Assembly (NCBI GenBank): GCA_038496445.1 | Contig: JALMLS010000255.1 | Coordinates: 1-64,000 of the forward strand | Source of the DNA: Trichosphaerium sp. ATCC 40318 | Lineage: Eukaryota; Protista; Tubulinea | Length of the DNA: 64,000 nt | Direction of reading: 5' to 3' | Shown: one piece after another, positions 1 through 64,000 of the stretch | How positions within the stretch are numbered: position 1 is the stretch's first letter | Layout of the letters: every line of letters starts with the position of its first letter | The notes under the pieces: model-generated | Database searches by the model: none | What the model saw: the letters and a program-made list of their open reading frames with translations, nothing else | Told to the model about the DNA's origin: nothing | Position numbers and translations under genes: made by a program

Positions 1-342
1 TGAATACCACTCTTTATACTCTCCTTCAAGCTCACCATTGACATAGTTACATTTTAATGTCAATGTGTCACGCCACGACTTGGATTCTCCATGTTTTTTA
101 CCACGTGCCCAGTTTACAATACTAAATTGTTCGACTTGCGATTTGCTATACCGTGGTATAATCTCTATTCGTTTCCATTTACCGCTCTTATTAAGCTCAC
201 TATCAAATCTTGTTGTAGTTGCAGCGTGTTTAGACAAGATAGGCCACTTTTTGTACACTTCGAGGTCCAAATCGATAATATCAAGCTGTATCTCTACCGG
301 TAGGCATGATAGTATGCTATCAAGTGATTCTGGAGCGTTCAT
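1..342 (-). CDS. F-box-like + MORN-variant (YwqK-like) repeat protein, 5' part, intact frame, runs off window
   Basis: ATG at 342: MNAPESLDSILSCLPVEIQLDIIDLDLEVYKKWPILSKHAATT...CNYVNGELEGEYKEWYS; no introns in the visible part. Confidence 0.8.
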   Translation of the reverse strand, partial: MNAPESLDSILSCLPVEIQLDIIDLDLEVYKKWPILSKHAATTTRFDSELNKSGKWKRIEIIPRYSKSQVEQFSIVNWARGKKHGESKSWRDTLTLKCNYVNGELEGEYKEWYS

Positions 343-594
343 ATCCTCGTATCGGTGTTTTAATGTTCAAAAACGATATGTCGCTTGAGAGGAGTGTTGT
401 GGCTTAGAATTTTGTATTCAGGCTTACTCCTAGCCGTGTTTGTTCAGTTCAGTTAATTCTGGTACCAGTCAAATAATTGTGTAACACAAAAAATGGACAA
501 AAAGTTTGATTGGCATAAAACGTTCGTTTCCCGTACAAAGCATGAAGGTAAAAGGCTAGAAAACGTTTATTCTAGCCTGTAAACTTTTTGTTGA

Positions 595-1666
595 TTAATT
601 AGGTACAACAATCGAAGCTCTTTGATTATACGGGTTAAGATGTGGATGCTTAAACCAACACTTGTCATCAATATGTCCAATCTTTTTACAGTGATTACAA
701 CGCTTTGTATCAATGTATGTTGGAGTATTAGTTTCGTATTGACCATCTATAGGGTAAGCCAAAGAGTCATTTATAACCATCAAACATCCATCACACATCA
801 TGCGTACTAGATAGACTGTAAACAAAACCAACAACAAACGAGAAAAAAATAAGAAAAAAATAATAAGTGCCGCACGTGCTATCCTTGCAATGTTCCTTGC
901 GTCATCGATTCCTAAAGTAATTTTTTAATGGCAATCCAAATTATTGGTTGTTATAAAGGAACCTGAATGCGGGCTTCCTTGAAACTGCATGCCAAAATCT
1001 CCAAGCATTCTTTCGATGTTACCACGTTTCTTGTTATAGAATGAAGCATTCAACCATCTAATGTTAACCCAACTATCACAATATGAAGGCTTCTTTATAT
1101 TCTTTAATTTACACTCCCTATCCAAGAACCTCCTTAAATCCCATGGCCTAAAAAGTGATCAACTTCAAACAAGATAAACATCAGCAATTTTTTTGAACAA
1201 CCAGAAGATTATCATCTTTTTCATTCATACCCGTCTGTTATGAACGCCCATGAACCTGGAAATTTTTCACGTGTTAGCGTTAACGGAATCATCTGTAAAA
1301 TTGCTAACCCGGAATATGTTTGGCCTGCCACGCATCAAAAAGGTCAACTGCTTCCGATAGAGTTACTCCTTTGTCAACTTGGTCCTTTGGGAACCATTAA
1401 CGGTTTCGTTCGTATTTATGCAAGTTATTACGCACCTGTGTAATGCCTGTAAGCTCTGTACAAAATTCTGTGAGCTTAGGATTTATATTTGGTTTTACAA
1501 ACACTCTGAAGCTTTCAGGCAATACACGGTAATTAGCGGCGTCTATTACAACTACTGGGAACTCTATTATTTCATTTTGGTATGAACGTGGAAAATAACG
1601 CTCGCAAGTAGCTTCAAAGTCAAGAACACAATAGTACTGGTACGGTTGTACTACATGGAACGACAT
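595..1666 (-). CDS. ERI1-family DEDDh 3'-5' exoribonuclease with C-terminal CCHC zinc knuckle (copy 1)
   Basis: VLDFEATCE, EIIEFP, FCTELTGITQ, TDGPWDL, HSGIDDARNIA motifs across 5 GT-AG introns; C-terminal CNHCKKIGHIDDKC. Confidence 0.92.
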
Positions 1667-2119
1667 TTCAACTTTAGTGGCTAAGGCATAGCTGATAGTT
1701 TCACTGAAGTGCTGTCGTACGTTTAGCCAGAGCAACTCTGCCGCGTATAAATTGCCCAATACTACGCGTCACATGCACGAGCACCTCTGGCCGGTATAAC
1801 TGAGTACTTTAGTTGCCAGTTGTCATATTTGTACCACGAAAAAGTTTCACATGAACCGGTACAACTTGCAATATAAAACATGGGTTCGCGTATTTATCAC
1901 AAAAAAAGTACAACGTGGTTAATTCCATTCACTTAAGTTGTAATCTATGGCAGCTTAAGGCTTTTTTTCATTCCGACCTCATCAACGAATCCACAGGTGC
2001 GTTGTGGTTTAATTTATGAAAGTATTAGCTACTTCGAAGCTTATAAATGGATCGTCTTGCTCTATTTTATCCTTACCGTACTCATAGGTGGCTTACTTAT
2101 ACACCAACGGCAAACTTTG

Positions 2120-3817
2120 ATGAAAATGACTGATTTTACCTCCACCAACAAGATTAAATGCAAAGCTTACTTCCACGACGACATTAGAGTATTTTACTTC
2201 CCTCGCGACTCCTTCGATGCACTTCGAAATAATATTCTCGAAGCGTACGGCTTATACGGGCAAGACATCCGTATAAAATATGAGGATGACGAACAGGAGA
2301 AAGTAACGATGGTGTGGTGCGTATAAACCAGATTTCTACCACTTTCCCCCGTTCTGATCTCCTAACAACCCTCATAGCCTCACAGATCTTCACATTGCGT
2401 TGAGTCATAAAAAACCTCTTCGTGTTTGGGTTTATTGTGGCACAAGCTCGTCGAATACTCTACAACAGAAGGATAACAATGCTCTTTCTAGGAAGGCAGT
2501 AGAAAGCTTAATTGCAGCTGATACGGTAGAATCTACCGTTTCGGAAAAACGGCACACTCCAAAACCCAAAAGCCCGCTCATCAAGTACGTATAGAACCCG
2601 TAAACAACCAACACGCTATAAAACCAAGTTTTCTCTACGAATTCCACGCGCCTTTTTATTTTTTTCTGTCAACATCTATAGACCTCATATCCTTACCATT
2701 GTATCTCTATAGGCAAGAGAAACAACGCTTACATGTCCAAATGAAAAAAGAAAGCGTTGGAAAAAAGCCCAACAAAAAACTCTTGCAGAAACGAGTAGTA
2801 TTGGCTGAATTAGCCTCTCGTGGTATTTTGAGTGGTAAGGGATGTGTTAATGTACAAAGAGGTAAAAAAGGCCGCGGAGGTTGGATAAACCGCGGAAATA
2901 ATATAAAAGCTTCGTCCTTTGGTGGTTCAGGGTCAAAGCATGGTTTTGGGGCGCGATTAGTTGCGCATGCAACCATACAGAATAATACTGAGATTTCTGC
3001 TGGATGCGATTTTGTTAAGACCTGGAAGGTCCAAAACATTTGCTCAAAGAGTTGGCCACAAGGTACACAAAAAAATTGCAAATTGCAATTTTTTCTTTTA
3101 CAACAGACACGTGAATGTGATTGTTATTGTCAAAAAAGATCGTTGGAGTTTTCAACAAAAACGTGCACAGATAGTTCAATTGTTTTTTGAATTTTTTTTT
3201 TTGGATTTTTTTGACTTGGGATTTTTTAGGCACAACACTGTTACTTGTTAGCAGTTATAATAATTTATCTGCTCCTCAGGAGATCCCTCTTTTAAGGAGG
3301 TTAATCCTGGGCAGGAAATCTTAGTCAGCGTTAACCTACGCGCGCCAGAGGGTACGTTTTTAGACCGCGGTCAAAAAGTTGAGCCGAAACAGCCTTTTCA
3401 CTGAAAAATTGTTGTTGGCGTGCGCCTTACATTCATGGGTTTCTTTTGCCCGTTGGAGCGTGTATTTTTTTGTATGCAAGTTGTTAACTTCTCCTTGTAG
3501 TACCTGGTACCTATAATGCGTTCTTTCGCCTTTCGGGTAATGGAAGCAGATTTGGGCCGCGCCTTGGTGTTAAAATAATAAGCGTCGGTAACGATGCTGA
3601 CGAGATGACAGAATCATTCTCTAGTGATTATGAGGTTGAGGATTATTGTAATAATGGATTCTCTTATCCTTTTTACGCTCGAGAAATGGAACAACTTTAT
3701 GAAATGGGTTTTCAAAAGAACAAAGAGACCCTTAATCTTCTTACAAAGCATGGTGGTAATGTAAACTTGGTTGTGCGTAATTTTTTTAATCAAAGAAGCT
3801 CAATGATGGTTATGTAA
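2120..3817 (+). CDS. NBR1-like selective autophagy receptor (PB1 - FW/NBR1-like - UBA), copy 1; 1-nt frameshift near 3295
   Basis: PB1 (IKCKAYFHDDIRVF...IKYEDDEQEKVTM), FW domain (FVKTWKVQN...WPQGT...SVNLRAPE...FGPRL), UBA (QLYEMGF...LLTKHGGNVNLVV). Reads aaggagg where copy 2 has aagggagg. Confidence 0.85.
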
Positions 3818-3917
3818 CAATGATACACTGTGTTGTAAATAAAATAAAAAATCTGAAAAAAATCCAAACTACACAACTAGTAACTCTTCTCGGACAATCA
3901 CTTTATATTGCCGTAGT

Positions 3918-15860: not shown

Positions 15861-16930
15861 ATGTCGTTCCATGTAGTACAACCGTACCAGTACTATTGTG
15901 TTCTTGACTTTGAAGCTACTTGCGAGCGTTATTTTCCACGTTCATACCAAAATGAAATAATAGAGTTCCCAGTAGTTGTAATAGACGCCGCTAATTACCG
16001 TGTATTGCCTGAAAGCTTCAGAGTGTTTGTAAAACCAAATATAAATCCTAAGCTCACAGAATTTTGTACAGAGCTTACAGGCATTACACAGGTGCGTAAT
16101 AACTTGCATAAATACGAACGAAACCGTTAATGGTTCCCAAAGGACCAAGTTGACAAAGGAGTAACTCTATCGGAAGCAGTTGACCTTTTTGATGCGTGGC
16201 AGGCCAAACATATTCCGGGTTAGCAATTTTACAGATGATTCCGTTAACGCTAACACGTGAAAAATTTCCAGGTTCATGGGCGTTCATAACAGACGGGTAT
16301 GAATGAAAAAGATGATAATCTTCTGGTTGTTCAAAAAAAATTGCTGATGTTTATCTTGTTTGAAGTTGATCACTTTTTAGGCCATGGGATTTAAGGAGGT
16401 TCTTGGATAGGGAGTGTAAATTAAAGAATATAAAGAAGCCTTCATATTGTGATAGTTGGGTTAACATTAGATGGTTGAATGCTTCATTCTATAACAAGAA
16501 ACGTGGTAACATCGAAAGAATGCTTGGAGATTTTGGCATGCAGTTTCAAGGAAGCCCGCATTCAGGTTCCTTTATAACAACCAATAATTTGGATGGCCAT
16601 TAAAAAACTACTTTAGGAATCGATGACGCAAGGAACATTGCAAGGATAGCACGTGCGACACTTATTATTTTTTTTCTTATTTTTTTCTTGTTTGTGGTTG
16701 TTTTTTTTACGGTCTATCTAGTACGCATGATGTGTGATGGATGTTTGATGGTTATTAATGACTCTTTGGCTTACCCTATAGATGGTCAATACGAAACTAA
16801 TACTCCAACATACATTGATACAAAGCGTTGTAATCACTGTAAAAAGATTGGACATATTGATGACAAGTGTTGGTTTAAGCATCCACATCTTAACCCGTAT
16901 AATCAAAGAGCTTCGATTGTACCTAATTAA
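15861..16930 (+). CDS. ERI1-family exoribonuclease with CCHC knuckle (copy 2)
   Basis: Mirror of 595-1666; ends SIVPN* versus SIVVPN* in copy 1. Confidence 0.92.
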
Positions 16931-20778: not shown

Positions 20779-23700
20779 CTACAACACTATCTCCGAGTCT
20801 GAGTCGTTTGTTTCATCTAGTTGTGTATCATTTTCTTTTTCTTGCTTGTATTCCTTCAGCTCCTTTTGTAGTTTATCGATAGTTCCTCGCAACTCTTGCA
20901 TTGTAGTTGTCAATGCATTGAATTTTTTTGCATTTTCTTCTTGTTGTTTCTTCAGTTTCTTTCTTAGTTTGTCGTTGGTTGCTTGCAACTTTTGTATTGC
21001 TGAAGTTGTTTCTGTATCATCTGGTGGTTTTTTTGCACTTTCTTTTTTTTTGTATTTCTTTAGTCGCTTTCGAAGTTTGCCATTGGTTGATTTCAACATT
21101 TGTATCATTGTGGTTGTTGCTGCATTGGATTGTTTCACACTTTCTTCTTGTTCCTCGTATTTCTTCAGTTTCTCTTGTAGTGTATCATTGGTCGCTTGTA
21201 ACTCTTGCATTGTTGTCATTGTTTGCGATATATTTGATAATGTTGTTCTTTTATCGCTTTGTCTATCATAGAGAGAAAGTTGTTCTTTTGAAAGTGTCAT
21301 GAAATACATTCTTGGAATGAGAATTGATAAGATGGAGATGAAAGGTCCAAGAATAAGACACGATGAACGAAGAATAAACGCAACTGAACGATTGTTACTT
21401 CCAAACACCTACACAAGTACTAAGCATATATTTATTAAATACAATAAGTGGTACCTGAACGATGATGAAGATGATGATAAAGAATGTGAGAGTGTAAACT
21501 GCAAATCCAATTGATCTATTCAAAACAAGTCAATATTACACTATCTAGTCTATCGTACCTTGATTCGTTGTAAAGAACAGCTTTCAATCTCCATATTCTG
21601 TACACCCAATAAATACCGTACAACAATACACATGCATTGAAAGCAAGGAGTATTGACAAGAACACAGCATCTGTTGTTGTGTTTGAACAATCATAGTAGT
21701 CATCAGATAGAATGTGTGGTGTTGACACTTCCTCGTATTCAGCTTTCGATGGACTCACACCTGTCCATATAGCCAATATCAGCACTTCGGTGGCAACAAT
21801 ACCAGTGACGATTGGAAGGATCATCCTGTTGGTGACTGTTTTGACTGCCAAACGTTTTTCAAAAAATATTTGACCAATTCTGTAAATACGAGCAAACATT
21901 GCTCCATATGCCAGCTATCACGTGTTAGTCAATGAAAAAAGTAACATTTATGGCTACTACAAAACGCAAAATTATGACTTCACTTACGCCAAAACCGACT
22001 CCAAGAAGCCATCTCACAACATTACAATGCAAATCATCAGTGTGAAGTGTCCAAAAGAAGACAGTCGCATACATGAATATTGTTCCAATCTAAACAATAA
22101 CAATGAGTGAGCAATTGGCATAGATTTAGGAACATACAAGAGCAAGTACAACGAACAAAGGTTGTGATGCACGCATTGCCCGATGTTTGCGGTATATCAA
22201 TACCCACGGAATGAGACAAAGAGTGATGAATATGAGAACGCTGACCAAACAAAGCATCACAAGCTCGCTTGTTTGTTCTTGAAATACAAATAAAGTGAGA
22301 ATAAATGAAGAAAAAGAGAAACGAAATAAGAAAATAAAAAGAACGTACTGTACCATCCAAATGTAGTGTGACGTTCATTCCATTTTGGAACTGGATATAC
22401 GAGCTCTGTAGTTACAGCATAAAGAGGGGCAACAATTTTTTGATTGTGATCATCTCCATATTGATACACCAATCGATTCCTTCCGCTATTCTGACCAAAT
22501 CTATCAAAAGTAACCTCTCCATAAAACCCAGTGATCTCCATTGCAGCAATTGTCTCTTGAATTGTTTCACTATCAAAGGTACTAAAATAAAAATAAGCAA
22601 CATGTGATTGTCACGTGATCTATAAAAAAAGAAGTCTATTTTTGTCGTACTTTGCTGTTTCGTAGGCGTGCTGAATAATGTATCCTGAAACGTAACCCGC
22701 GGCACCAATCATAGTAGGATCTTCTCCAAATCGTTGTTTATACTTGTTGTTGAATATCATTGGTGATGCGATTGTTCCATTGCTCACAAAATGATAGAAA
22801 TTGGTCATGTCGTTTTCGTCATGGAATTCAGTGTTAAGGTTTTTATCCCACTACAAATGAGTTATTCAAATAAAATAAAATAAGAAGAGTGTATTACAAA
22901 AAATCCACTGGACAAGGTATACTTTAAATCATCGCTAATGTCACTGTCGCGATCAATACACACAGGTGAAAATGTATATGCCTGTAATGCAAAGTTAGGT
23001 TACAGAATTGACAGTTTATACAGTAAAACGCATAAGAAATAATTCACACCTTTGCATTAAAGTCAAGCTCTTTTGAAGCACTCATAAAATGTTTACAAAT
23101 GATAGATCCTTCTACCAATACAATATCTAAAGTCTGGTAAGTGTTTGGTAGACGTTCTCATAGTATTTAGAAATGTGTACCTGGTTTGTGTTCCTGTTTT
23201 TTGAGTTCTTTGACCACTGATTTCATTGTTGTGGATATAAAGGTCATGTTGGCTGGAATACGTTGCTCGTATATAACTGTCAGATTAAAAAACGGCATAG
23301 ATTTAAATACTTCTCCTATTAAACGATCGAAATTTTCTAAGCATAGGATTTGGTGAGCAAGTAAGACACAACTGATCGGATTTCTTTTAAAGCTGAGACA
23401 TTTTTATTTTGGGCTAAGTGACTGTAGTAGCCTAGAAAACTCAAAATTGGCAGTACCTGGCCATATAACGGCTACAGTGCGGGCACCATGACTAGCCAAC
23501 AAACCAAGAGATTCTGTGTAAACCTTTGTATATGGTGCAAGTAATCCGAAATAGTATTTATACTTTCTTCCTAAAGGCACAGTACATGGAGGGTCTAATC
23601 TTTCATCACATATATTATAACCAGGAGATTTAATTTGTGCTATAACAATAAATACCAAACACAAATCCTTTGGCTACAGCAGAGTATCCAAAACACGCTC

Positions 23701-25528: not shown

Positions 25529-27342
25529 ATGTTTGCTGTCAAAATAAGTTTAGTGGTTTCTTTGTTGTTGGTTTGTTTGGTACAGTGTGAAGGTTAGGTT
25601 TTGACGTTCTAATCGTCATCTTATTCTTCAAGCGTAGGCAGTGATATAGGTACTATTCAGTCTGTATACCTTCAAGAAGACTTTCTTTTAACATGGCAAA
25701 TAATGGGAGAATAGTACGTCAAAAGTAGTTTAATGTACGCCTTATGATAACTAACTATCGTTCTGTAGCATTTCTATAAGCGTCACAAGTACAAAAGTAA
25801 GCCACATTTTCCTTTCTGATGTTTTTTTTTTTCGTTGCCTTAACACGTGGTTGTAGTTAGGTTGGATTGCTATTGGGTGGCATAACCCAGGAGAATTTAA
25901 TAGTATGGCAAATACAGATATCACAACTGCAACTTTCGATAAGTCTGGGAAGGTAAGAGACTTATGAAAGCGAAATACGCTTACATATTCTATTTAGCTT
26001 GCTAGTGTCGACGATAGATACTACCCTGGTCCTAGCGGAGGAGGTTTTCCATTACTGGATACCGAACAGGTTTGAAATAAGAGCAAACAATCACGTTGTC
26101 TTACAACGAAACTTAGGGTGGTACAAATGATATTGTCTCTTTTTCTGGATATCAAGCAACAAATCCTCCGCTATCAAAGTTCACCTTTCTTAAAAAACTA
26201 GAAACAGGTGATAAGATGGATATACCTGTTTCTAACAATTCATACCCGCACGTGATTTCTTTCGACATAACGCTTTCACAGCATTTTTTAAATCAACTGT
26301 TTTTTTTGAATGTTTCTAACTCCTTTATAGTGTTATTTATGCATGGGGAGATTCAAATGATTTCGGATACCATGGACCGAATGCGGGTACGGGTCTTAAC
26401 ACTAAAGGTTTTTCCTTAAAGTTCTTGGACTAACGATTGTAGGATCGTCTAAAACTGCTTTAAATTTCTTGTCTGGAGGAAAAGGAGCTCCTGTATTAAA
26501 GGATCCAATGGCAATATATCGTCAATTGCATGCTTTGTTAATGTTTGCAGCGTACGTGACTGTTTGTTTTAACTCACTTACTGAACGTATACAGGTTCGG
26601 TGTCTTGATATTTGCTGGCGCTTTTATAGCTCGTTTTATGAAGGCTTACAGATGGTGGTTCCCACTTCATATTGCTGTCCAAGTCACAGGTTCAAGTGCA
26701 ATACTTTCAAATGAATTACTAATACCTTGAAGCGCTGTGTTCTTCTCTGGTCGCTTTTTCTTTTGCCGTGTATTTGGTTCAAGAAAGTAGTGTACGTCGT
26801 AGTGTCTTTATGTTTGAACACTGAATAACTCCGTTCAGGGAGCACACTTTACAAAGATACACCACTGGTTTGGTCTAGCAGCTATGATTTTGATGAGTAT
26901 GTCTCCTTTCCTCGGCTGGTTATCGGACATGCTATGGAATCCAAGTAGAACCAAAATACCAATATGGCCAGATAAACTACACTGTACAAGTTACCGTTCA
27001 AAACTTCTCTTTTAACTTTTTACAAATAGGGTGGGTAGGAAGACTAACAATGGTTTTGGGCGTTGTCGCCATTTTCCTTGGGATGTGGATTATGGTTAAC
27101 AAGTTCTTAAGTACGATTGAATATGTCAGTGCGCGATAACAACTTATTGGATTTTTTAGTGATTCTGTTTGGTGTTCTTGTTGCTTTCTATGTATTTGTA
27201 CTGTGCTACGTCTCAGTATATAAGCGTGTTAAAGGCGATCTTGTGAGGTTTGTGGGCTATCTTTTCTCAAGAATTATGCCTAACTCTTTATGGTAGTGAA
27301 GATGTTCATAAACCTTTGATAATTAACCACGATGAAAGATAG
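25529..27342 (+). CDS. DOMON + cytochrome b561 domain protein (ferric-chelate reductase-like)
   Basis: Signal peptide; DOMON (GWIAIGW, SMANTDI, VIYAWGD...YHG); b561 histidines (QLHALLM, WFPLHIAVQ, IHHWFG, KLHWWVGR). Contains one GC-AG intron. Confidence 0.88.
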
Positions 27343-27585: not shown

Positions 27586-30398
27586 CTACATTACGCTGCA
27601 TTTCTTTTTATCGGACGGTAGTGTATTTTGTATAATATCTCTTTGTCTTTTCTTTAGTATCCCATGGATACAAATAGCACGGCACAAATTATCAACATTA
27701 AAACCAGTCGTAGAACTATTTTTTGGTAAAGAAAAGGTTAGAATTCAAAACTATTTTAGTGTTCATCAACTCACCTTATCTCAAAAAACATAGCTCCTTT
27801 TCTTTTAGCTATTACAATACCTTCTTCAAAGCTTACTTCTCTATCTTTACTCCTATCCACATTATTCCTAAAGCAAAGGTCAACAGTGTGATAGCAACTT
27901 CAAAAAATCAAAATTAGAATTTGTTGAAGTGCCTATTCTCGGCGATCATGTAAGTGCTCAGTCACTTAATGTTGACCTCCAAAAAAGTTTACACGTACCC
28001 CACTACAATGTAAAGACAATTTGGCTCTGCTTTATGCTTCATTGCTAAGTTGTATATGACAGCATCCACAGTACGCTTGTTTGTAATATCATACATGAGT
28101 ATTAAAAAATCTTTTATGTAAAACCGTGAGGTGTAGCCAAGTGGAGTATGAGCCAGCGTTACATTAGTTTGTATTGTAACATTATAGAATGTCCTATTCT
28201 CAGACATAAAAAGTTTTCTTCTTAGAAGTTGTTTTCCTAGGCACGTGATTAAATATTGAAGAAAAAAAGCAGAATTTTTTTTTTCTGGTACCAGTGTCTT
28301 TATTGCCAATAATGAAACCCATAAGTTTGTAATTCGTAGTAAAATCTAAATTCTTAGCGATTTGAACGAATGTTTCACGAACAAGGTTGTGATCAGTGTT
28401 GCTAGGAGACCATCTAAAACAATTTTTTATTCAAAAACAGAAATCAAGAGAAATGATATTTTGTACCGCCTTGTCAACGCCACTCTGGCATTTTGCTTCC
28501 AATTTATTCCGTCATTACTACGTTCATCCATAGGAATCAAATCAATATTGTCGTTATCACCTTGAGTACGTGTAAATGTTAGCTAGGTAACTGTTCTCAA
28601 AAAGAGTTGTAAATGTATAAGAAACGCACAGTTTAAGAAAAGTGCTTTCCATAGCATGCTGTCTTGGCTTTACAATGCAATATATGTTAGTGGCTCAAGG
28701 TTATTTCGGTAGATTGCTACCTTACTGAATTCAAAAGCTTACAAGTACATGAGATGCTACAAAGTTCTGAGTAATCCAAGGTTTTGAAACAGTGAAACAA
28801 AATCTCATTTGGCATATCCAATACTGCACAATCAGAACGTGAATCTTCATTTCTCTCTAGTAAATAACTGTTAACTCAACACCCATTTTAACGAGGTCAG
28901 TCAAGGGAAAACGATTAAGCATACCTTTTGAGAACGTATAAACATCTAAAGTGTTTGCGGAGGTTTCTGAAGGAGAAGCTCGTTAGCCGTCACAACAAGA
29001 CTTGTATGACTTGGTACCAATACTATATATAGTCCCCATACATGAGCATCCAATTGAGCCATTTATATCACCAGGATAGAAAGGAGAAGAGAATACAGAC
29101 CAACTGTCGTTATCTAGTTTTCTTGTTTAACAAGAATACTTTTTGTCACAGAAAATAATGTGCTACGCACCTAGATTATAAGCCATTGTTTTATGCCCTT
29201 CTTCTGCGCTAGGGTTTATATTTTCTCCATAGAATATCATGTAATTTTTATACACAAACGTATTGTGGTGCGTAAAATACTATTGACTTTTTAAGACAAC
29301 AAACTTTGGAACTTAATTTTGTTGACTTACCTTTGGCACTTCTTTTACCGGAGTCCACTCGTAATCGTCTGCACGGTATGTATATATTTTAAGAAGATTG
29401 TCAGAATCATTCGTAGACCCTCCTACCAGAAACCTACAAACAAAGATACAAGTCAGAAAAAAAAAAGCCTGGAATCTCAGTTTTTTCTTACAAACAACGG
29501 TTATAAATTGCTGCATTGGAGAGTAATGGACTTGGTTTTTCTACTTTAAGAAACACTACTTCCTTACGAAACGATTCTAGGGTTCATATTAGAGCTAAAC
29601 GTAACCCTGGCGACTCTAAAAACATGGCTGCTGTAAATTCTTGATTTTGTTTGATGGTAAGCTCTTCCAGTCAACGTACTCAAGTCTGATATCCAAATAT
29701 CGTTCACTTGGTCTTTGCGATTTTTATTGTCGTCTGGATTTGATAGTAACATCAGAAGATCGCTGAAAACCCTTAGCAACAACCAAAAAAAAAAAAAGGG
29801 AGACAAATGAATCCAGAAAAAAAAAGATTACCTGGCCATAGAAGCTGAAGTAACGTGCTCACTAAGAGGCATTGCATCCACATTAATACTTGCTTTTATT
29901 CTCCAACACTTATTGACTATAAAAATAAACTGTTAGCACCACCACGTTCTTTTATTTCTTTGAAATAAATATGGCACGTGCTTGTATCAAAACAATGAAT
30001 GGCTCCTTGAGGTGTTGTTGTTTTCGCCTTCTTTGTCTTTGAACTGACAACTACGTCTTTGCATTCATAAAACAATATCATGTCACCCCAAACTACAGCA
30101 GGTGCAGTGACTGATAGCTGACATGACGAAAAATCGTATTTTTGTTGATTTTGAGTATCTGAACGGTAAAACGATTAAACTGACTGTAAGCTATACGACA
30201 GTAGTCTCACATACCCAAATTGACCATGTAGCAGCTTGTTATGGAATCATCGTCATCGTTTAAACTACAAAATACATATAACTCGTTTTTGATCACTATG
30301 CTGTTTATATTACGCTCTACAATTGGTATTGGAGATAAATCAAGTCTACAACGCTTGCTCCATTTAAAGCCGTCCCAATCCGTAAATTCTTGGCTCAT
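27586..30398 (-). CDS. Kelch repeats + F-box + degenerate Ras/Rab-like GTPase domain + CaaX
   Basis: Kelch-like (LYVF, FLVGG...YEW), F-box (LDMPNEILFHCFKTLDYSELCSISC), G-domain (IIGNKDTGKQ, LMYDIT, VVGNNVD, REVSFEEG, FFEISS), ends KKKCSVM*. Confidence 0.8.
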
Positions 30399-33600: not shown

Positions 33601-34448
33601 GTACCAGATCAATTATTTTGAATTGTTTTGCGTTAAAAGGTCTTATGCGTTTAACTTTGCTTGCCAAGAATTTTGTAACTTCCGGATCTTCTCGTATGCT
33701 CGGTACTGCGAAAACCTATGTTATATCACGTGATCAATAACTTGTGGAGTTATAAAATAAAAGTATTGTTACGTTCGAACTAAACGATGTAAAATAACTC
33801 CGTCACGTGAAAGCACGTGGTGTCGTTTCGTTTTAAAGGGTTTTCAGATTTTTTAATTTATCTGTTTTCGTTTTTTGGATCTATCCGAAAGACATTGTAC
33901 CTCCCGTAGACTAAACTCTATTTTAACGCGACGGTTCTCTGCCTCGTGATTATCACCAGCTTTACCAGTAACGTGTGGAAATTCGGAAAAAACAACCATT
34001 GGGTACTCTTTACGAACCTAAAAAGAAGCAAGGTAATTAGGAAAAACAATAAAAGACATAAACACCTTTACGGTTTTTTTACATACCAGCTTGAATAGTT
34101 TTGCAAGATTTTTATCTTTAACATGCTTAAACGTCCATAGCTGATCTCTGAATTGTAATGTAACCGTATAGAACGTCTATATACCGAAATAATGAGAAGA
34201 AAGCAAAACACTTACATACAATTTTTTTTTTTGGTTTTTTTTTCTCTCGAATTTGTGGATTTAAAGCGTACAGACTTGTTAATTTGCATTATTCCTCGTT
34301 TTGGTACGTCAACTCTGAACTCTGTTGTAAAGTAGTCTACGATGAATTCTTTCTTTACAGGCAGGTATGGTAGCTCAGTATCGCTTGTTTCAATAAAAGA
34401 TTCTGTGTCTTTTTCCATAGCGAGTGGGTAACTAGCTGCCTTCGCCAT
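30661..34448 (-). CDS. PX-like + VWA + RhoGAP protein
   Basis: RhoGAP (LFGVDI, EDGLFRVPAN, IKLFLHELPNPLM, NRMSAENM); VWA (FCLDLSKSM, SGTAIFRA, IFLYSDAFDN); N-terminal PX-like region (FYTVTL...FP...RRVKIE...FL). Confidence 0.82.
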
Positions 34449-34834
34449 ATGTGTAGCTAAAAAACCTTTTTGTCTAAAGTAGCTTATTCCTCCTCAAATG
34501 GTGTTTAGTTCGGGTTGGTGCGTTTAATGAAATCACGTGCTTAACTCTACTTTCGACGTTTTAAGCAGTTACTGCAAACCACAAAGCGGCTGAATCGGGA
34601 GAAAACCGTATGAACTACACTCGAAACAAAGCTCATGGACTAGCGACGCACGTGCACTTTTTTAAAGGCTTCACAAAAGAAAATCTTTGCTTATGGCGTA
34701 TAGATTCTGATAGAATGTCTTGTTGTAGCTATTGTTATGAGGAGGGTTACCATATTTATAGGAACAATCTGTTGGAACGCAGACATTACTTTTTTGGAAC
34801 GGTCATAAACCGCTAACAGAGATAAGCATGGTAT

Positions 34835-35752: not shown

Positions 35753-36234
35753 TGTAGTTTTTAACGGAATGTTATTCCAGTTGTTTAATACCCAACAGCG
35801 TTCGGGTAATTGAATCTAGGCGCAGGTGTGGCTATTATTGGAATTGTAAATTGTGATTAAGCAAAGTTTATAAATAAATCACGTGCTTGAATATTTGCGA
35901 TGAATTTTCGCATTTCTGCTATCTAGGAGACAAGTTATGCAACGGAATAGATACAGTGCAGCAAAATGAATAGAGAGCTATAAGCAGTTCCCATGTGGGT
36001 TTACCCAACTGCAGTTGTGTGTGAAGGTAAAGTATTCACGTAATAAAATTCGCATTCCTTTCTTCTTTGGTAGGATAGAATGTACCGTACCTGATAAAAG
36101 GGAACATTAATGCAGCTTATCAAGCTTCTGAGATGCTATCTTAATACGTTACACGCCTGATATGGGTATGGATATAGTGTAAAAAGGTATAAAAGCCATC
36201 TTACTGTACACATTGAAGAAAAAACCGTTGGGTT

Positions 36235-42043: not shown

Positions 42044-45000
42044 ATGAGACAAACTAGAACTTGTATTTTACAACTATTGGCTGTATTCATAATAACCACG
42101 TTGTCCCAAGAGCCTGTATTGCGGATTGGATCCGTATATATAAACGATGGATTTTTAGCTTCATCACAAAACAGTATAGCACAGGGCCTACAGATGTGGC
42201 AAGAAGAAGTAATTTTCGTACCTTCTACACGTGTGTAGCTAACCATTTTATTACTTTTTTACAGGTCAATGTTCGCGGTGGTATTAATATAAACGGCACT
42301 AAACACCATGTTGAAATAATAAGAGTTGGAGTTCGTAAGCGGAGTTCAACAAAAGGCATAGTTATTTCATTAATATAACTTTAGCACAGTTTCCAACTAA
42401 TGCCTCTATAAATGGTACAATGGAGCTGATAAAAAAGGGCGTTGATTTCATACTATTGGTGCGTTGTGTGCCGCCACGTAGCAGAAAATTACTCCGGAAC
42501 TCCATTTTATACTTTATCGTATTTTATTCTTCTAGTTTTGTAGTAGCTGATGTATTGTAGCCAACAACATCTGAAGTCGGAGAACTAAGTGCTATTGTCG
42601 CTAATGATCACAAAATCAATTCAATACTACGCACGTGATTTTCGGAGCTTACAACTTTTTTCGATTTTTGCCTGAAATTTTAGTAGCTATTGACTTCATA
42701 CTACTTAACACTGCGTAAAACGTTGCCAACGGGCACCGAGCTATTGTTGAGTGTATTTCTATTTTGTATTTATTTTGTACATTAGCATCAAGTGGCGCAC
42801 CTTCTGTGTATATATGCGATGGAGCGTTAAGACCGCCGTGTGCGGTTCCGTTCGGAAGAAGGTTTAAATACACTGTTGGATTGACTCTACCAAGTGTAAA
42901 GTACTACACAGAATCTCTTAATTTGTTGGCAAGTCATGATGCACGCACTGTAGCAATCATATGGGAAGGTACCTGCAAACTAAAGTGCTCGCCAAAAACA
43001 ATGACATTACTTAGATTTATTGCTTTCGAATGCTGTGATTGAAGGAGCATTGAGATCTATTGCATTTCTAAATCTAAAAGTTGTTTACAAGCGAAAAATA
43101 CCCTTTATTGGATCACCAGCATTAAGAAAAAGTAAAATGCGATCCATAGTTGAAGAAGTAAAAGAAACCAAACCAGGTACTTTTTTTTTAATCTATGTTG
43201 ATGGAGCTAAAGAAGGTGAACCCTAGATATCGTAGTTATGGCAACGATTTTCTCTTGTGTAGATTTCATGGCAGCTTCAAAGGAACTTGATTTTAATGCA
43301 AAGGTACGTAATTGTACAAGCTTTTCTCCATTCTTTCTTATATTTTTTTTTGAAAGGCATACTTAGTTTCCGCTCAATGTATTGCACGGCTTCCTCGAGA
43401 CCTTGGTAATGATTCAAAGTATATATTAAGCGGTGGATTTATTGTGCGTTTATATATTTTAAATACAAGGGCGTTTAGAAGACGTTTAATACTCGTTGTA
43501 GTGGGACGAAAGATTGAGAACTGATTTATATGACGAAAACGATATGACAAATTTCCATCATTTTGTGAGCAATGGAACAATCGCATCACCATCGATATTC
43601 AATAGTAAGTATGAAGAAAAGTTTGGACATAATCCACGTACTGCTGGCGCTCAAGGATATGTATCTGGATACGTTATTCAATACGCTTATGAAACCGCAA
43701 AGTACGATAAAAATAGACTCTTTTTGTATTTTAATCACGTGACGATCACATGATTTAATATTCATTTTAGTACATTCGACAGTGACACAATACAAACAGT
43801 GATTGATGCGATGGACATCACTGGATTTTATGGAGAAGTTACTTTTGATAGGTTTGGTCAGAATCTTGGAAGAAATGGATTGACATATCAAGTTGGAGAT
43901 GATCTCAATCTTGAGATTGTTGCTCCTCTTTTCGCTGTTACTGCACACTTCGTATATCCAGTTCCAAAATGGAATGAACGTCAAACAACTTTTGGATGGT
44001 ACAGTACGTATCATTATATTGTCTTATTTCGTTTCTCTTTTCTTCATTTATTCTCACTTTATTTGTATTTCAAGAACAAACAAGCGAGCTTGTGATGCTT
44101 TGTTTGGTCAGTATTGTCATATTCATCACTCTTTGTCTCATGTTATGGGTATTGATATATCACGACCACAGGGTGATACGTGCATCACAACCTTTGTTCG
44201 TTGTACTTACTCTGGTAAGCGCTCATAAATATCTGTTTGATGATACTCACACTTGTTTATTAGATTGGAACAATATTCATGTATGCGACAGTCTTCTTTT
44301 GGACACTTCACACTGATGATGTTCATTGTAATATTGTGAGATGGCTTCTTGCAATCGGTTTTGGCGTAAGTAATTACTTCTTAAAATATAATGATAAACG
44401 TGATTAACACGTGATAGCTGACATATGGAGCAATGTTTGCTCGTATATACAGAATTGGTCAAATATTTCTTGAAAAAAGTTTGGAAGTATTCAAAGTCAC
44501 TAACATGATGATCGTGCCAATTGTTACTGGTATTGTTGCCATTGAAGTACTGATATTGTCTATATGGACAGGCGTGAGTCCATCAAGAGCTGAACGTGAA
44601 GAAGTCGCACCATTCATTCTATCAGATGACTACTTTGATTGTACAAACACAACCACAGATGTAGTGTTCATGTCGATACTCCTTGTGTTCAATGCATGTG
44701 TATTGTTGTACGGTATTTATTGGGTATACAGAATATGGAGATTGAAAGCTGTTCTTTACAATGAATCAAGGTACGATAGACTAGATAGTGTAATATTGAC
44801 TTGTTTTGAAATAGATCAATTGGATTCGCAGTTTACACTCTCACATTCTTTATCATTATCTTGATCATCATCCAAGTACCGCTTACCTTAGCAAACATTA
44901 ATTGCTTATTACTGGATTAGGTGTTTGGGAGTAGCAATCGTTCAGTTGCGTTTATTCTTTTAAATCTGCCTTGTTGTCTTTTTGTGAATGTAGTTTGGTA

Positions 45001-45067: not shown

Positions 45068-45157
45068 CATATCCTTATCTTATTGATATCCATTATTTTG
45101 TAGCAGTTAATAAATTACACAGCTAGTGATATTAGACAACATACGTTACACCACAAA

Positions 45158-48986: not shown

Positions 48987-52223
<3,237 letters not shown>

Positions 52224-59600: not shown

Positions 59601-62600
59601 ACGTTCGAACGCACAGTTCAGAGAAATTTAAGGTCCTCTGAGACTTATGATGTATGAGTGCCAGCGTATTTATTATCAACATTTCAATAATATCTCGGCT
59701 AAGAAAAGTTAGCAGAGGATTTTGTATTCATCTTTATCTCATTCAAACAGCCTCTTATGTTACCTTGATTCTGAGGCTCCTCGTTCGACACCAAATTGTG
59801 CTTGACTTAACCACTTAATTGCTTCTTCAAGCATCTAAAAAAATGACTAAGCTGAAAGGTAATTCTCTCATTGTTCTACTTACTTGTCCTTTGTAGTGTG
59901 CTAAACCTTTTAATGTACAGTACCGTGTGTATATACTAATAGGTACTTCGTTATCAGCAGGTGCTATATTAATGTGATTTAGTATTTTATCACAAGCAGA
60001 GAACAGCTCAGTAGCTGAAGGATCCTTCAACATGCAATCTTGTAAAGCAAGTGATAATAATCTTCCAGCTCTACTAATATGGACGTTATCTCTACTTTCT
60101 TTTTCTTCTCCTATCTTTGGTCCTTTTACTGTAGCTTCAATAGAAGTTATATCATCAGTTTCAAAAGGCTCAGCTACTTCAAAAAGCTTCGGATTATCGA
60201 GCAATGCAGCTTTTTTTTTTGGAGATAATGTTATCCCAATTTGCTTCTCCAAAGCCTAGAACAAAAGAGCTTCAGTTTAAATGACAGTTTATATTAGATA
60301 TATTTAACAGTTAACCTTTGTTGGGAGTTTAGTTTGAGGAGAGCATGATTTGCTTATTTCTGAGTGTGTTTTGTTTTTTGAAAAGAAAAAAGCTTGAAAC
60401 TCTTCTAGTTTTGTATTGTTTGTACAAACAAAATTAATGTTGTCTACTTTCTTACCATTAATAGTACATGCTTGTTAATATTACTCCTCAAATCGTAGTT
60501 ATCCTTAACTTCACGTGCTTTCAATGGAGCACCAACCTTTTTTTGTTAGCCGAAATAAACTTGAAAAAAAAAAGACATACTAGAGAGTACTTTAGAAGAA
60601 TCTGAACTCTGATAACCTTTGTCCATAAAACGTCTGCAGCATTATGAAATCCAAATACAAGATTTAATACACTAACTATCTTTCTAATAGATTCATTATC
60701 ACTCATATCTTGTTGAGACCTTAATTGTCTCAATGCATAATTCTTAATACATCGTGCGGACATCTCGGCAAGCATGATGCTGTTAAAAAAGTAAGCATGG
60801 CGCAGTTAAATACACATGATTGTAATGACAGTCTGTACAAGCTCATGTGCACGAGAGATTCAAGTTATGGGTACAGGTTTCGTTATAGGAGGAATCACAT
60901 GAGACACTGCACTTAGTAATACATTTTCACTTTGAGCTGAAAGAAGAAAATATCGTTTTGTTGTAAGCGTACCCTTCGGTTTGTTCTAAATCAATACGAG
61001 ATCTAAGGATACCAATGTGTCTAAGGTTTATGCCATACGAGTGCATTTGTTCAACTAATTCATCACTTGAAGAAATGACAACACTACGGTCTTGTATTTT
61101 ACTTGCCAACCTGCAAAACTATGTTTAGTATATTTGTCAAAAGCACGTTGGTCATTGTTTACGTACTCTCCAATCTTGTCTTGGCGCATATTGTTTGTTG
61201 CTTCAATGATTTCAGGATTGTTCGTATCTTTCTCCAATTTACCAAAGTTTGAGCACTACAACAAGGTTGGAATAACCAAAAGATCGAAGAGAAAAAAAAA
61301 ATTCACAAAATGGTGCCATGTGTAATACATACAGCATCAGAACTTAATGGCTTGCTAAATCCTTGAACAAGTTCAGGTCTTAATTGATAAAATAAAGACC
61401 TCCCGCTTAGCCTATGAGCGGTTAGCATGGATGCTTTCTCGTTCGAAAAATGTATTAATAGTAAATACCCGTATACAACCCATACTGTTCCATGAACCTT
61501 GCGTTGTGCTATTATGGACACTATTTCGTTTAACTCGTCCTTTGGATCTATGGGAAGTCAGGTAAGGGTATAGGGTAAGCTGAAGTAATACGTACTGTTG
61601 TCACCAATGATGACACCTTCTGGTATCTTTATTACTGGTCTTTCTTTCATTAGTGACTTAATTGTCCTAGAAAGCACGTGAATATAAGAAAAAAGTAAGC
61701 TGATGTATCTTACGACATATGAACATCGAATGTATGTGTTAAACCATCTGCTGAAGCGCGAATGACTTAAACAAAAGCCTGTTAGTTAAAAAAACTATCA
61801 ACAATTGTTAGTTGTAGTGCGCACTTGGAAAGTAACCACTAAAGTATTCTGGTGGAAATATACGTGCTGTATCTAGTACATAAAAGCAGTTATCACTACC
61901 TTTATGAACCTCAATATCACAAGGAGCTGCTATAGTAACATTATTTGCTACAAGATGTTCTTTGATATTAAGATGAACAGCACAAGCTTTCATAAGTTCA
62001 TCAACTTGTTTATCACATGCGCATGTTTTACCGGAATCATCTAACACGTTGAGTTAATAATAATCTTCTTTAACAATAGTCACGTACTTGATCCGTACAC
62101 AAGTGTAGAATTACTTTGTATTGGAAGCACTGGAGCAGCTAAAAGGCGGTATCCTCTGAAATGTTATCAGACAAATGTGGCATTTTTTCTTGTTTTTTTC
62201 TTACTTATAATCAATAGTAATGAGTAGTGGTACTCGAAGTTTCTTCAATTTAGAATTCTTTAGTACCACCTTTCTATACGCTTCTAACCCGTGAAGCTCT
62301 AAATTCGCTTTTTGTTCAAATGTCAGACAGGGAAATCTTTTAATTAATAAAATCGTACAAACTTTTTTTGCAAACTCATCGCTTCCATAAAGACCGTGGT
62401 TATCAATACAGAATTTAAAAAATATACCGTCTACCTAATAAAATAGTTTAATAGAATGTATTTATGCGATAAAATGGCATACAATATATTTCTCACCACC
62501 AGCAATACCACCTAATCAAAAACTTAAAATGAAATAAAGTTCTTTGAACCTTACCAATTTTAACAGGTTGTATGGTTCTTGAATGCATTGGTAATTTACA

Positions 62601-63098
62601 TTCGTTGATTATACGGCGACCTATGCCAGTGGCCTTTGCTGTAAAGTCTTTCACAATAGACGTTATATCACTGAACTGTGAATTATCAACAGCACGTTGA
62701 AACTTTTCGTTCCATTTCGGATCCATAGCTAAGAAATTAGCATTTTGCTAGCTTATTTTCTGGTGGTGTTACAAAACACACGCACTGTTGATATCCTTCA
62801 ATTCAGGCTCCTTTATATCAATTAATTCCTCAGGTTTATCCATTTCATCACTATGTGGTGTCACTGCGCCGTATATTAAATCAGCTTCATCAGTGTTCAC
62901 ATCAATATAAATAGAAGCTTCATCTTCCTCTTCAGAATTTGCATCGTAGGCCGTTGCTAGTCCATACACAGTGTCTGAACTATGTGCGTATTGTGGATAG
63001 CCCGCAGTACCTTCGTAGGCGTAAGGGTCGCCCAACTTTGGTGCCGTATACGCGTATGAATTCATTGAACCTTCCGCGTAAGAGTATTCTGAACTCAT
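56692..63098 (-). CDS. CLU (clustered mitochondria)-domain protein with helical region and C-terminal RCC1 repeats, probably one multi-exon gene
   Basis: CLU motifs (GGIAGGEKY, IDYRGYRL, DIEVHKGSD..FYVLDTARIFPP, LRPELV, MHSYGINLRHIG, EMSARCIKN); RCC1 motifs (ACGVEFAALL..DGSVYTFGNNEKGQLG, GELYIWG). Continuity across 58360-59200 not fully verified. Confidence 0.75.
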
Positions 63099-63459
63099 TC
63101 TGGCAATATACATCTGAAGAAACCAAATTAGGATGAAACGGCTACTATTCGCTTATACGTTTGTGCTCTCGTCGGTCAGTACTGTACTTAACTGGCTAGC
63201 GCCCTTTTCGTCATTTTGATCATTCTCGTACACCCAAGGCATCAAAAACCAATTATACAGACCTGTTTTTGGCCCTTTACGCTTGCGAGGCTTTCTGGGC
63301 GGAATAAATCGCATTATTAAATAGATTAGCGCCCAAAGACTTTATTATCAAACAACGAAGCGCAACAACTCGCTCAGTGGTAACACCGACAACCGTTTGT
63401 GTTTTAGGCCTAGTTAAGTGGTATTTTTTAAGTTAGTCCGATTTTGGAGTGTGAAACTA

Positions 63460-63780
63460 TCTCATTACTACAATCGCAACCGGATTTAGAGAGAGCAACC
63501 TTGATGTACCCTAATGAAGCATATATTAATGCCAGAAACTGCTCACTTATCGATATTTTCGCTGTGAAATTCGGCAAGAGCATTCTCTAAGTAAATGCAA
63601 AGTCATGGTCTGCCAGGATAGAATGACTTGGAAGAGATAAACACTTACTCGTGTATTGCGTTAGAGCCACCGAGACGTTGATCTTCCTCCAAACCGCGGT
63701 CCTGTTCTCTCTGTTGTTCATACAAAAGCCCTTCATAAAACTCTTCAAAATAGAACAGAAACTCGATATCGAGCTTTTAA
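63460..63780 (-). CDS. Possible 3' exons of a gene starting further right
   Basis: ELDIEFLFYFEEFYEGLLYEQQREQDRGLEEDQR...|gtaagt followed by further GT-AG-bounded short segments; no recognisable domain. Confidence 0.3.
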
Positions 63781-64000
63781 ACTAAATTTCGTATTTAGAA
63801 AGTGACAAGCTACCGTATCGAGGCCACGCTGAGAGGTTTCTAAAACAGGTTTGCCACCATATTATTGTTTGGATTGCTATTGTTCGAATTGCATGTTGTA
63901 CTCCATGAGTTGTAAATGAACAAAGTACATGTACTAGTAGCTTTGAACAACACCACAGTAGAGCTGTTACATTTGCAGTTTAGCAATAAATGAGATCAAG

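Follow-up and report, generated by a model that had tools for sequence, protein, structure and literature searches.

In this study, we have demonstrated that no word other than the palindromic hexamer CACGTG is strongly over-represented in a 64-kb stretch of Trichosphaerium sp. DNA (the window), that CACGTG is spread evenly through non-coding DNA at approximately 12 times its expected frequency, and that within introns it is found preferentially just before the 3' splice site. We tentatively postulate, with rather less than even confidence, that CACGTG functions on DNA, as the site of a mark or of a sequence-specific factor that binds as a dimer, and that selection would keep it, with a preference for positions just upstream of exon starts.

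Over-representation of an exact palindrome

The window (GC content, 37.1%) contains 66 exact matches to CACGTG, in agreement with the 60 to 70 that an earlier sequence-only reading had counted by eye. That reading had assumed a GC content of about one-third and 5 to 6 expected sites; its claim of an excess holds, but its baseline was too low, since the order-0 expectation is 7.5 and dinucleotide-preserving shuffles of the window gave a mean of 10.0 sites (SD, 2.7; maximum, 18), with none of 100 shuffles reaching 66. The Markov-background count that it had proposed was run on the window and gave expectations of 7.5, 9.8, 11.0, and 15.7 for orders 0 to 3, respectively. Because 66 sites stand against an order-3 expectation of 15.7, the excess survives the ACGT/tetranucleotide control under which, it had been suggested, the signal might disappear. 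The excess is 4.2-fold over order 3 and 1.8-fold over order 4, whose expectation of 37 already includes the pentamers of the motif itself. With the motif masked from the background, non-coding DNA contained 42 sites against 3.35 expected (12.5-fold).

It could be argued that these counts are an artefact of composition or repeats, produced by an ACGT-rich donor consensus, duplicated DNA, or a dispersed repeat family. The GTACGT donor consensus does raise ACGT counts, ten sites are mirror copies within a recent inverted duplication (1-8700 versus 10046-17490; 99 to 100% identical), and two further pairs lie within an older paralogous gene pair. However, the excess over orders 3 and 4 is unaccounted for by such effects, the 56 independent sites amount to approximately 6 times the order-2 expectation, and the unique part of the window has 55 sites where about 9 are expected. 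Furthermore, an all-against-all comparison of the ±60-nt flanks of the sites revealed no dispersed repeat or MITE carrying CACGTG, a single 16-nt identity being the sole match besides the known duplications. The Markov controls, the unique-part count, and the flank comparison refute this explanation, to which we give almost no credence.

The enrichment is confined to the exact word. In non-coding DNA, the one-mismatch neighbors of CACGTG together occurred at 1.16 times, or approximately at, expectation, with TACGTG at 1.34 times and CATGTG/CACATG at 1.79 times. The palindrome stops at 6 bp, with no extension outside CACGTG; statistically, one flank is independent of the other, and both half-sites favor A at the second flanking base and disfavor C at the first. 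Such identical, independent half-site preferences are what two identical monomers would give. The observed/expected ratio for CpG was 0.8 to 1.03 across all compartments, which indicates that there has been no strong CpG decay.

Distribution of CACGTG across genes and their flanks

The 56 independent sites comprise 10 exonic sites, 19 intronic sites, 4 sites on donor junctions, and 23 sites (41%) that are intergenic or unannotated. Their density was 1.85/kb upstream of ATG codons, 1.72/kb downstream of stop codons, and 1.68/kb in introns, so that promoters did not stand out from the rest of the non-coding DNA; non-coding compartments were at approximately 12 times expectation and exons at approximately 2.7 times. 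In the 6 kb mapped with RNA, all four intergenic sites fell outside transcript contigs, where the evidence consists of Logan contigs from four runs and absence from a contig does not exclude unstable transcripts. Two of these four sites closely precede mapped 5' ends of transcripts and have an identical 13-mer, AAGCACGTGATTT: one (34530) is on the upstream side of gene 30661-34448, which is RNA confirmed, and the other (35876) precedes a cDNA 5' end that belongs to gene 34835-35752. The features discussed here are listed below.

Table 1. CACGTG-containing features of the window (a slash marks a splice junction)
Feature	Position	Strand	Context
CACGTG	16254..16259	+	12 nt before 3' splice site, predicted intron 16219-16271; mirror copy 1268
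CAC/GTG across predicted donor	16650..16655	+	intron 16653-16721; mirror copy 873
ctaaCACGTGatag/	21919..21924	-	3' end of predicted intron 21915-21987; conserved at paralog site 44408
Mid-intron CACGTG, conserved block ATCACGTGACrATCACATG	22612..22617	-	block common with paralog site 43736; rest of intron diverged
ccttaaCACGTGgttgtag/	25844..25849	+	7 nt before predicted 3' splice site, intron 25797-25856
GCACGTGATTT	26248..26258	+	start of predicted GC-AG intron 26248-26330
ttaatCACGTGcctag/	28242..28247	-	5 nt before predicted 3' splice site, intron 28237-28291
Two mid-intron CACGTG (31422, 31515)	31422..31520	-	RNA-confirmed 278-nt intron 31285-31562
CACGTG (gctaaCACGTGggtttgttttag/)	31800..31805	-	12 nt before 3' splice site, RNA-confirmed intron 31788-31897
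CACGTG	32920..32925	-	12 nt before 3' splice site, RNA-confirmed intron 32908-32998
CACGTG (CACGTGtag/)	33452..33457	-	3 nt before 3' splice site, RNA-confirmed intron 33449-33604
Three CACGTG (33727, 33804, 33814)	33727..33819	-	intron 33716-33900
CACGTG in aaGCACGTGATTT	34530..34540	-	ends 8 nt upstream of adapter-marked cDNA 5' end 34525
Intergenic CACGTG	34649..34654	.	bin of zero transcript depth, all four runs
CACGTG in aaGCACGTGATTT	35876..35886	-	ends 21 nt upstream of adapter-marked cDNA 5' end 35858
GCACGTGATTT	42631..42641	+	probable GC-AG donor; paralog gene 20779-24367 has GTACGT donor there
Paralogous copy of 22612 conserved intronic block	43736..43741	+	paralog alignment
ttaaCACGTGatag/	44408..44413	+	3' end of predicted intron 44366-44417; paralog of 21919
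CACGTGctttctag/	61675..61680	-	8 nt before predicted 3' splice site, intron 61667-61713

Within introns, most of whose coordinates are predictions of our own simple gene model, 10 of the 19 independent sites end 3 to 12 nt before the 3' splice site (baseline, 15%; permutation P = 1.4e-4), and the remaining 9 fall elsewhere in the intron. Of the 16 RNA-confirmed introns, the model recovered 13 in a leave-out test; one of the model's predictions proved false. When RNA-confirmed introns alone were considered, 4 of 8 sites ended in the same zone (P = 1.2e-3). One-mismatch variants had no positional bias (3 of 29 in the zone). Relative to a branch-point-like yTnAy pentamer, the hot-spot sites start anywhere from a 1-nt overlap to 3 nt after it; five read yTAAC-ACGTG, and TAA directly adjoined CACGTG 6 to 7 times against about 4 expected, which is not clearly above chance. 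In the intron with three copies (33716-33900), the site at 33727 lies 11 nt upstream of the 3' splice site, and removal of this intron leaves a 730-aa reading frame open; the site at 31515 lies within a copy of the 11-mer GCACGTGATTT. Both of the intronic sites that could be aligned between paralogs are conserved, in introns whose aligned columns are 63% identical, and one of the two is inside a 20-nt conserved block.

These data bear on several proposals of the sequence-only reading. Its eight quoted intronic examples were all located, those at 31800 and 32920 in RNA-confirmed introns and the other six in predicted introns, of which 21919 and 44408 are also backed by paralog alignment. The bias that it had suggested seeking in the distance to the 3' splice site was found. 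The tie to splice signals was borne out in this respect, but not as a property of the motif as a whole, given the intergenic or unannotated share and the equal density outside introns. Only approximately 16 of 155 independent introns (5 of the 16 RNA-confirmed introns) carry CACGTG, approximately 90% are without it, and approximately 6% have it in the branch-point/3' splice-site position; CACGTG is therefore not an extended branch-site signal of this lineage, as had been proposed. A general spliceosomal intron signal was likewise rejected, on the basis of the same intron count and the 23 of 56 sites that are intergenic or unannotated. The alternative proposal, of a DNA-level or methylation-related mark placed at introns, fits the distribution better than does a branch-site signal, except that the sites are not confined to introns.

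As had also been noted, donors are overlapped by a small number of sites; some of these donors are of the GC-AG type and have the sequence GCACGTG. The two GC-AG donors share the 11-mer GCACGTGATTT, and it appears that GC-AG donors exist only as GCACGTG. The donor consensus, GTACGT, is unusual, with C at position +4 in 54% of donors. The site at 41581 is similar to that at 16650, with CAC/GTG across the donor.

Possible readers of the motif

We postulate that CACGTG works chiefly through DNA, as the exact recognition site of a factor that would bind as a symmetric dimer; candidate readers would be a protein of the bHLH-Zip or bZIP type or a palindrome-specific DNA-modifying enzyme. Selection would keep approximately one site per kb in all non-coding DNA, with a lower level tolerated in exons, and within introns the motif would be preferentially retained in the short spacer between the branch point and the 3' splice site. 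Taken together, this spacer preference and the sites located 8 and 21 nt upstream of two mapped transcript starts suggest a tendency for CACGTG to be placed immediately before exon starts, which may reflect a chromatin or cotranscriptional role. The 1.8-fold enrichment of CATGTG/CACATG in non-coding DNA agrees with selected sites decaying by mutation, not with conversion toward the motif. However, a promoter-type factor predicts a higher density upstream than downstream of genes, and the densities are equal; no regulon known to us comes close to a density of one site per kb; and this explanation offers no ready reason for a hot spot 3 to 12 nt before the 3' splice site. No CACGTG-binding protein or modifying enzyme is encoded within the 64-kb window.

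The hot spot might be accounted for more directly if CACGUG were an RNA-level splicing element, read after the branch point by a spliceosomal RNA or RNA-binding protein and modulating 3' splice site use in a subset of introns. Canonical U2 snRNA (..CAAGUGUAGUA) pairs through ..CAAGU-GUAGUA with CUAAC-ACUUG, and canonical U1 snRNA has the sequence AUACUUACCU. It can be envisioned that an extended U2-branch helix accommodates introns that read CUAAC-ACGUG and that the donor copies, GCACGUG, are U1 related. The significant bias in all introns and in RNA-confirmed introns, its absence from one-mismatch variants, the closeness to yTnAy pentamers (starts at -1 to +3), the five yTAAC-ACGTG sites, and the shared sequence of the two GC-AG donors are consistent with this proposal, and the GTACGT consensus suggests that the spliceosomal RNAs of the lineage may have changed. 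Nevertheless, we consider an RNA-level element unlikely: most introns do without CACGTG, the intergenic sites, on both the 5' and 3' sides of genes, are as dense as those in introns, the four in the RNA-mapped region lie outside transcripts, exons are enriched too, and a perfect palindrome is not needed for an RNA signal. In addition, the variable register misfits a single fixed base-pairing scheme, and the adjoining TAA does not clearly exceed chance. The 64-kb window contains no snRNA gene.

The even density over non-coding compartments, with exons lower yet still raised, and the enrichment of the exact word alone would also be expected from a generative drive without function, in which biased repair or gene conversion turns near-cognates into CACGTG and selection clears only constrained positions. 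The GC-AG donors are suggestive in this regard, since GCACGTG stands where GTACGTn is usual, as if a T-to-C change at +2 had generated the motif while sacrificing the canonical GT. However, near-cognates are not depleted in non-coding DNA, they do not share the hot spot, which is thus not a precursor effect, and paralogs that have diverged still share intronic sites. We know of no such sequence-biased drive in eukaryotes, and we regard this explanation as quite improbable.

A more speculative variant of the DNA-level proposal, and in our judgment a long shot, is that CACGTG serves as a genome-wide self or chromatin mark that is read by a domesticated palindrome-specific binding or modifying system, with the exon-start sites acting as barriers. 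Sites at transcription starts and 3' splice sites would then position nucleosomes or pause the polymerase. If so, a DNA mark would be linked to exon definition, a kind of mark that is undescribed in eukaryotes.

Comparison with known systems and significance

CACGTG is the E-box/G-box, which is bound by bHLH-Zip factors (Cbf1, USF, TFE, and Myc-Max) and by plant G-box bZIPs. The sites described here are reminiscent of these elements in their palindromic hexamer, exact-word recognition, and independent half-site flank preferences, as for a homodimer, and in the two copies that closely precede mapped 5' ends of transcripts. They differ in being equally dense in introns and in 5' and 3' flanks, with an added hot spot at the 3' splice site; known E-box/G-box sites are, to our knowledge, concentrated in promoters and not enriched 12-fold across a whole genome. 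As a short exact word present about once per kb irrespective of gene anatomy, with unenriched variants, CACGTG resembles Chi (GCTGGTGG) and the DNA uptake sequences of Neisseria and Haemophilus. Unlike CACGTG, those words are prokaryotic, oriented or nonpalindromic, and tied to RecBCD or DNA uptake, and we know of nothing comparable in a eukaryotic nucleus; our analysis of the window revealed no machinery of this kind.

In Trichomonas and Giardia, the fused branch-point/3' splice-site motif (ACTAACACACAG) likewise has the branch point CTAAC followed directly by AC.. and a nearby AG, as does ctaaCACGTGatag at 21919 and 44408; however, that motif is found in essentially every intron, whereas CACGTG is in position in few introns and is equally common outside them. 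Very-short-patch repair (CCWGG in Escherichia coli) provides a further parallel, in which, again, one exact palindromic word containing a methylatable C occurs in excess, but it depletes the deamination neighbors, which are enriched here. Another amoebozoan, Physarum polycephalum, also has a lineage-specific short motif close to the 3' splice site: the branch-point motif TTTGA, at a fixed short distance (9 to 12 nt) from that site, which has coevolved with the U12 snRNA (Larue et al., bioRxiv 10.1101/2020.10.12.336362). Unlike CACGTG, which is not mentioned in that paper, TTTGA is the mark of introns of the U12 class, with corresponding changes in the U12 snRNA (10.1101/2020.10.12.336362). None of the 16 RNA-confirmed introns of the window had a U12-type donor.

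A full-text literature search found no published account of CACGTG saturation in eukaryotic non-coding DNA. In conclusion, a perfect E-box palindrome occurs throughout the non-coding DNA of a eukaryote at approximately 12 times expectation and at a density equal to that of bacterial uptake- and Chi-type signature words. The system should be easy to test, since it offers one exact hexamer, thousands of natural sites, and GC-AG donors that are apparently GCACGTG only. Whatever reads CACGTG must take part in one of the commonest sequence-specific interactions of this nucleus. With a reader of RNA, the motif would be a new lineage-specific intron element; with a reader of DNA, the hot spot would directly connect exon starts to a factor or mark on the DNA.

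Overrepresentation and exactness of CACGTG

The 64-kb window (37.1% GC) contains 66 copies of the palindromic hexamer CACGTG; 100 dinucleotide-preserving shuffles yielded 10.0 ± 2.7 copies, with a maximum of 18. Markov models of orders 0, 1, 2, 3, and 4 predicted 7.5, 9.8, 11.0, 15.7, and 37.0 sites, respectively, so that the excess claimed by the sequence-only reading survived a tetranucleotide (ACGT) background (order 3); against the order-2 background, CACGTG was the top-ranked hexamer. Once ten mirror copies in a recent inverted duplication were dropped, 56 independent sites were left, and the unique part of the window contained 55 sites versus approximately 9 expected, with all other words far behind. 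A compositional artefact was ruled out, since the excess holds against the order-3 and order-4 models, against the shuffles, and without the duplicated DNA; a dispersed repeat or MITE as the carrier was likewise ruled out, because the flanks of the sites are unrelated. The duplication itself is nearly perfect, with long segments that are 99 to 100% identical (e.g., 5042-7513 versus 10046-12517) and patches of 91 to 97% identity. CCGCGG was the second most overrepresented palindrome, with 10 sites (7 independent) versus 1.5 expected, two of them 18 nt apart within an exon.

Enrichment was limited to the exact hexamer: in noncoding DNA, the nine one-mismatch classes pooled reached 1.16-fold, and CATGTG and CACATG, the products of CpG deamination of CACGTG, reached 1.79-fold. 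The CpG observed/expected ratio was 0.8 to 1.03 across all compartments. That the word is generated by a drive with no function is improbable in our estimation; conversion drive is disfavoured because the neighbours of CACGTG are not depleted and its deamination neighbours are enriched. A longer palindrome or hairpin was ruled out, there being no symmetry past 6 bp. At a given site, the left flank is statistically independent of the right one; C is avoided at the first flanking base on both sides alike, and at the second, A is found 5' of the word in 30 of 56 sites and the mirror T is found 3' in 25 of 56.

Gene models and the distribution of sites

Four public RNA runs were mapped on 30601-36600, where transcript contigs confirmed 16 GT-AG introns in a single gene (the confirmed gene). 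With these introns spliced out, a 730-residue open frame results; the introns are 56 to 278 nt long, with GTACG or GTAAG donors and yTnAy branch points (CTAAC, TTAAC, TTAAT, and CTTAC). The rest of the window was annotated with our own gene finder, which scored coding sequence with a 3-periodic Markov model and splice sites with donor and acceptor weight matrices, treated intron length explicitly, and masked CACGTG in every emission to keep it from biasing its own classification. A conservative setting was used because unconstrained self-training fused genes into chains. When the confirmed gene was withheld from training, 13 of its 16 introns were recovered. Contig Ga0186627_104814 from a public culture metatranscriptome (JGI 3300016894) matches an actin-related gene of the window with 100% identity; it bore out one of our predicted introns and refuted another (54118-54207). 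Therefore, the predicted coordinates are good but not perfect. No transcripts of the GPCR gene or of the gene with the GC-AG donor were found in the JGI contigs. Coordinates are collected in the table.

Coordinates of genes, repeats, and short words in the window
Feature	Position (nt)	Strand	Remark
Inverted duplication	1-8700 and 10046-17490		Centred near 8780
Mirrored genes in duplication	595-1666/15861-18081, 2120-3817/13711-15407, 4868-5782/11777-12681		
Local direct repeat	7043-7211 (mirror 10348-10516)		Unannotated; ~87 nt, 97% identical; two CACGTG 163 nt apart
Paralog pair, inverted	20779-24367 and 42044-44920	- and +	Intron-rich; ~21.5-24.4 kb versus 42.0-44.9 kb
Tested exon of second paralog	44433-44864		Pfam 7tm_3 match (class C GPCR)
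CACGTG in both paralogs	21919/44408		3' end of intron
CACGTG in both paralogs	22612/43736		In 20-nt conserved block also holding CACATG
Confirmed gene	30641-34525	-	
Intergenic CACGTG, RNA-mapped stretch	30612, 34534, 34649, 35880		Outside transcript contigs (4/4); 34649 in a bin of zero depth in all four runs
uS12/RPS23-like ribosomal protein gene	38176-38890	-	Missed by gene finder
Intron-rich genes	48987-52223, 45412-46927, 56692-58956		No CACGTG in introns
Rfam tRNA model match	52447-52521	-	41 bits, above gathering score; may be an unusual tRNA gene
Actin-related gene	52917-54289	-	Transcript with one 45-nt intron, 33-nt 3' UTR, and a stretch of at least 345 nt ahead of called start
Open reading frame	54924-55826		Homology search: three distant matches only
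GCACGTGATTT	26248, 42631		Donors
GCACGTGATTT	31511		Mid-intron
GCACGTGATTT	5991 (mirrored 11558)		Possible GC-AG donor
GCACGTGATTT	34530, 35876		8 and 21 nt upstream of probable cDNA 5' ends
ACCCGCACGTGATTT	5987-6001, 11558-11572, 26244-26258		15-16 nt identity between otherwise unrelated places
CCGCGG	2872, 2890, 3365 (mirrored 14158, 14632, 14650), 17173, 22697, 52248, 63694		

ARAGORN found no tRNA anywhere in the window. The 56 independent CACGTG sites comprise 19 in introns, 10 in exons, 4 at predicted donor junctions, and 23 in intergenic or unannotated DNA, and the densities are 1.68 per kb in introns, 1.33 in unannotated DNA, and 0.37 in exons. With the motif masked from the background, noncoding DNA contained 42 sites versus 3.35 expected (12.5-fold) and exons contained 9 versus 3.35 (2.7-fold). 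At least one of the unannotated sites (38247) is probably intronic, 26 nt upstream of the 3' splice site in the last intron of the uS12/RPS23-like gene, so that the count for introns is a minimum. In the 300 nt before start codons the density was 1.85 per kb, and in the 300 nt after stop codons it was 1.72 per kb; a promoter-only element was ruled out, as the word is equally dense 3' of genes. All eight sites of the confirmed gene are intronic, with none in its 2.25 kb of exons. Clustering in particular genes was unsupported, because, even with one gene carrying eight intronic sites, dispersion over genes was not significant (chi-square, 22; 18 df).

An older paralog pair allowed conservation to be assessed. 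Identity is 76% over exon columns and 63% over aligned intron columns, and the introns occupy conserved positions. Both intronic CACGTG sites in alignable introns are retained, and four other sites are present in only one paralog; therefore, constraint and turnover are both present.

CACGTG at 3' splice sites

In ten of the 19 independent intronic sites, the 3' splice site follows the word at a distance of 3 to 12 nt. This zone accounts for 15% of the hexamer positions available in introns, and placing sites at random within the same introns gives P = 1.4e-4. The bias was also found in RNA-confirmed introns alone (4 of 8 sites, ending 3, 11, 12, and 12 nt before the splice site; P = 1.2e-3), and one-mismatch variants showed none (3 of 29 in the zone). 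Density is approximately 6.7 per kb in this 10-nt zone versus approximately 1 per kb elsewhere in introns. The ten sites start from 1 nt of overlap with to 3 nt past a branch-point-like pentamer, and five of them read yTAAC-ACGTG; TAA abutting the word, considered as branch-point adjacency, was not clearly above chance (6 to 7 observed versus approximately 4 expected). The tie to splice signals postulated by the sequence-only reading is thus borne out as a positional bias but not as a general association, since only approximately 16 of 155 independent introns contain the word at all and 23 of 56 sites are intergenic or unannotated. Pairing of the 5' splice site with the 3'-end motif of the same intron was ruled out, a GTACGT donor being found in 0 of 10 such introns, and no intron had both a CAC/GTG donor and a 3' copy, as an introner or target-site-duplication model would have it.

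An RNA-level splicing element would account for this hot spot; however, it fails to account for the remaining features of the CACGTG distribution, and we consider it unlikely even for the intronic subset. If it took the form of an extended branch helix, U2 would be expected to read ..CACGUGUAGUA and not ..CAAGUGUAGUA; no snRNA gene lies within the window. In placement, CACGTG recalls two known intron motifs, the U12 branch motif of Physarum and, in Trichomonas and Giardia, the fused branch-point/3' splice-site motif; presence in most introns, as would be expected of either kind of motif, is not seen for the word here. Full-text literature searches gave no hit for CACGTG together with Physarum and none of relevance for its combination with Amoebozoa, introns, or branch point, and a term search of a Physarum minor-spliceosome preprint returned no description of it.

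Across the 155 independent introns, donors have the unusual consensus G/GTACGT; position +4 is C in 54% of donors, and position +5 is G in 68%. The most frequent donor hexamer is GTACGT itself, with GTAAGT, GTGCGT, and GTATGT next in order. This consensus is suggestive of a changed U1 or U6 interaction in the lineage, and a U1 reading ..ACGUACCU would account for the GTACGT donors. Both GC-AG introns seen appear to begin with GCACGTGATTT, an 11-mer with six independent occurrences in the window. The donor at 26248 was predicted by the gene model; that at 42631 replaces the GTACGT donor of its paralog at the homologous position, and the acceptor is homologous too. The copy at 5991 may be a further GC-AG donor, in an unannotated plus-strand gene. 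All five copies with known context are in gene-sense orientation, which was not counted as evidence because sense-strand T-richness alone could yield it. Contigs of the 2023 runs end at 34475, 34525, and 35858, running into adapter-like sequence (reverse complement, GTATCAACGCAGAGTACGGG) that we take to be a template-switch adapter; these ends are probably cDNA 5' ends. For the ends at 34525 and 35858, a copy of the 11-mer is followed by TTAA, and the cDNA starts at the first A of this TTAA.

Proposed level of action of CACGTG

Our preferred reading, to which we give somewhat less than an even chance, is that CACGTG acts primarily at the DNA level. This view is based on a density that is the same in introns as 5' and 3' of genes, on the enrichment in exons and the sites outside transcripts, and on the strict palindromy combined with independent, symmetric half-site preferences. 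It leaves the 3' splice-site hot spot unexplained, and the probability remaining after all three readings belongs to explanations that we have not thought of. CACGTG is the classical E-box/G-box word, with the same core and symmetry here but without the concentration in promoters, and in how densely and exactly it occurs, it is reminiscent of bacterial signature words, Chi and uptake sequences among them. Acting at the DNA level, the exact word would be read by a symmetric dimer and maintained by selection. Taken together with the two sites that closely precede transcript starts, the hot spot suggests a preference for positions immediately upstream of exon starts, which would fit a barrier or pausing element.
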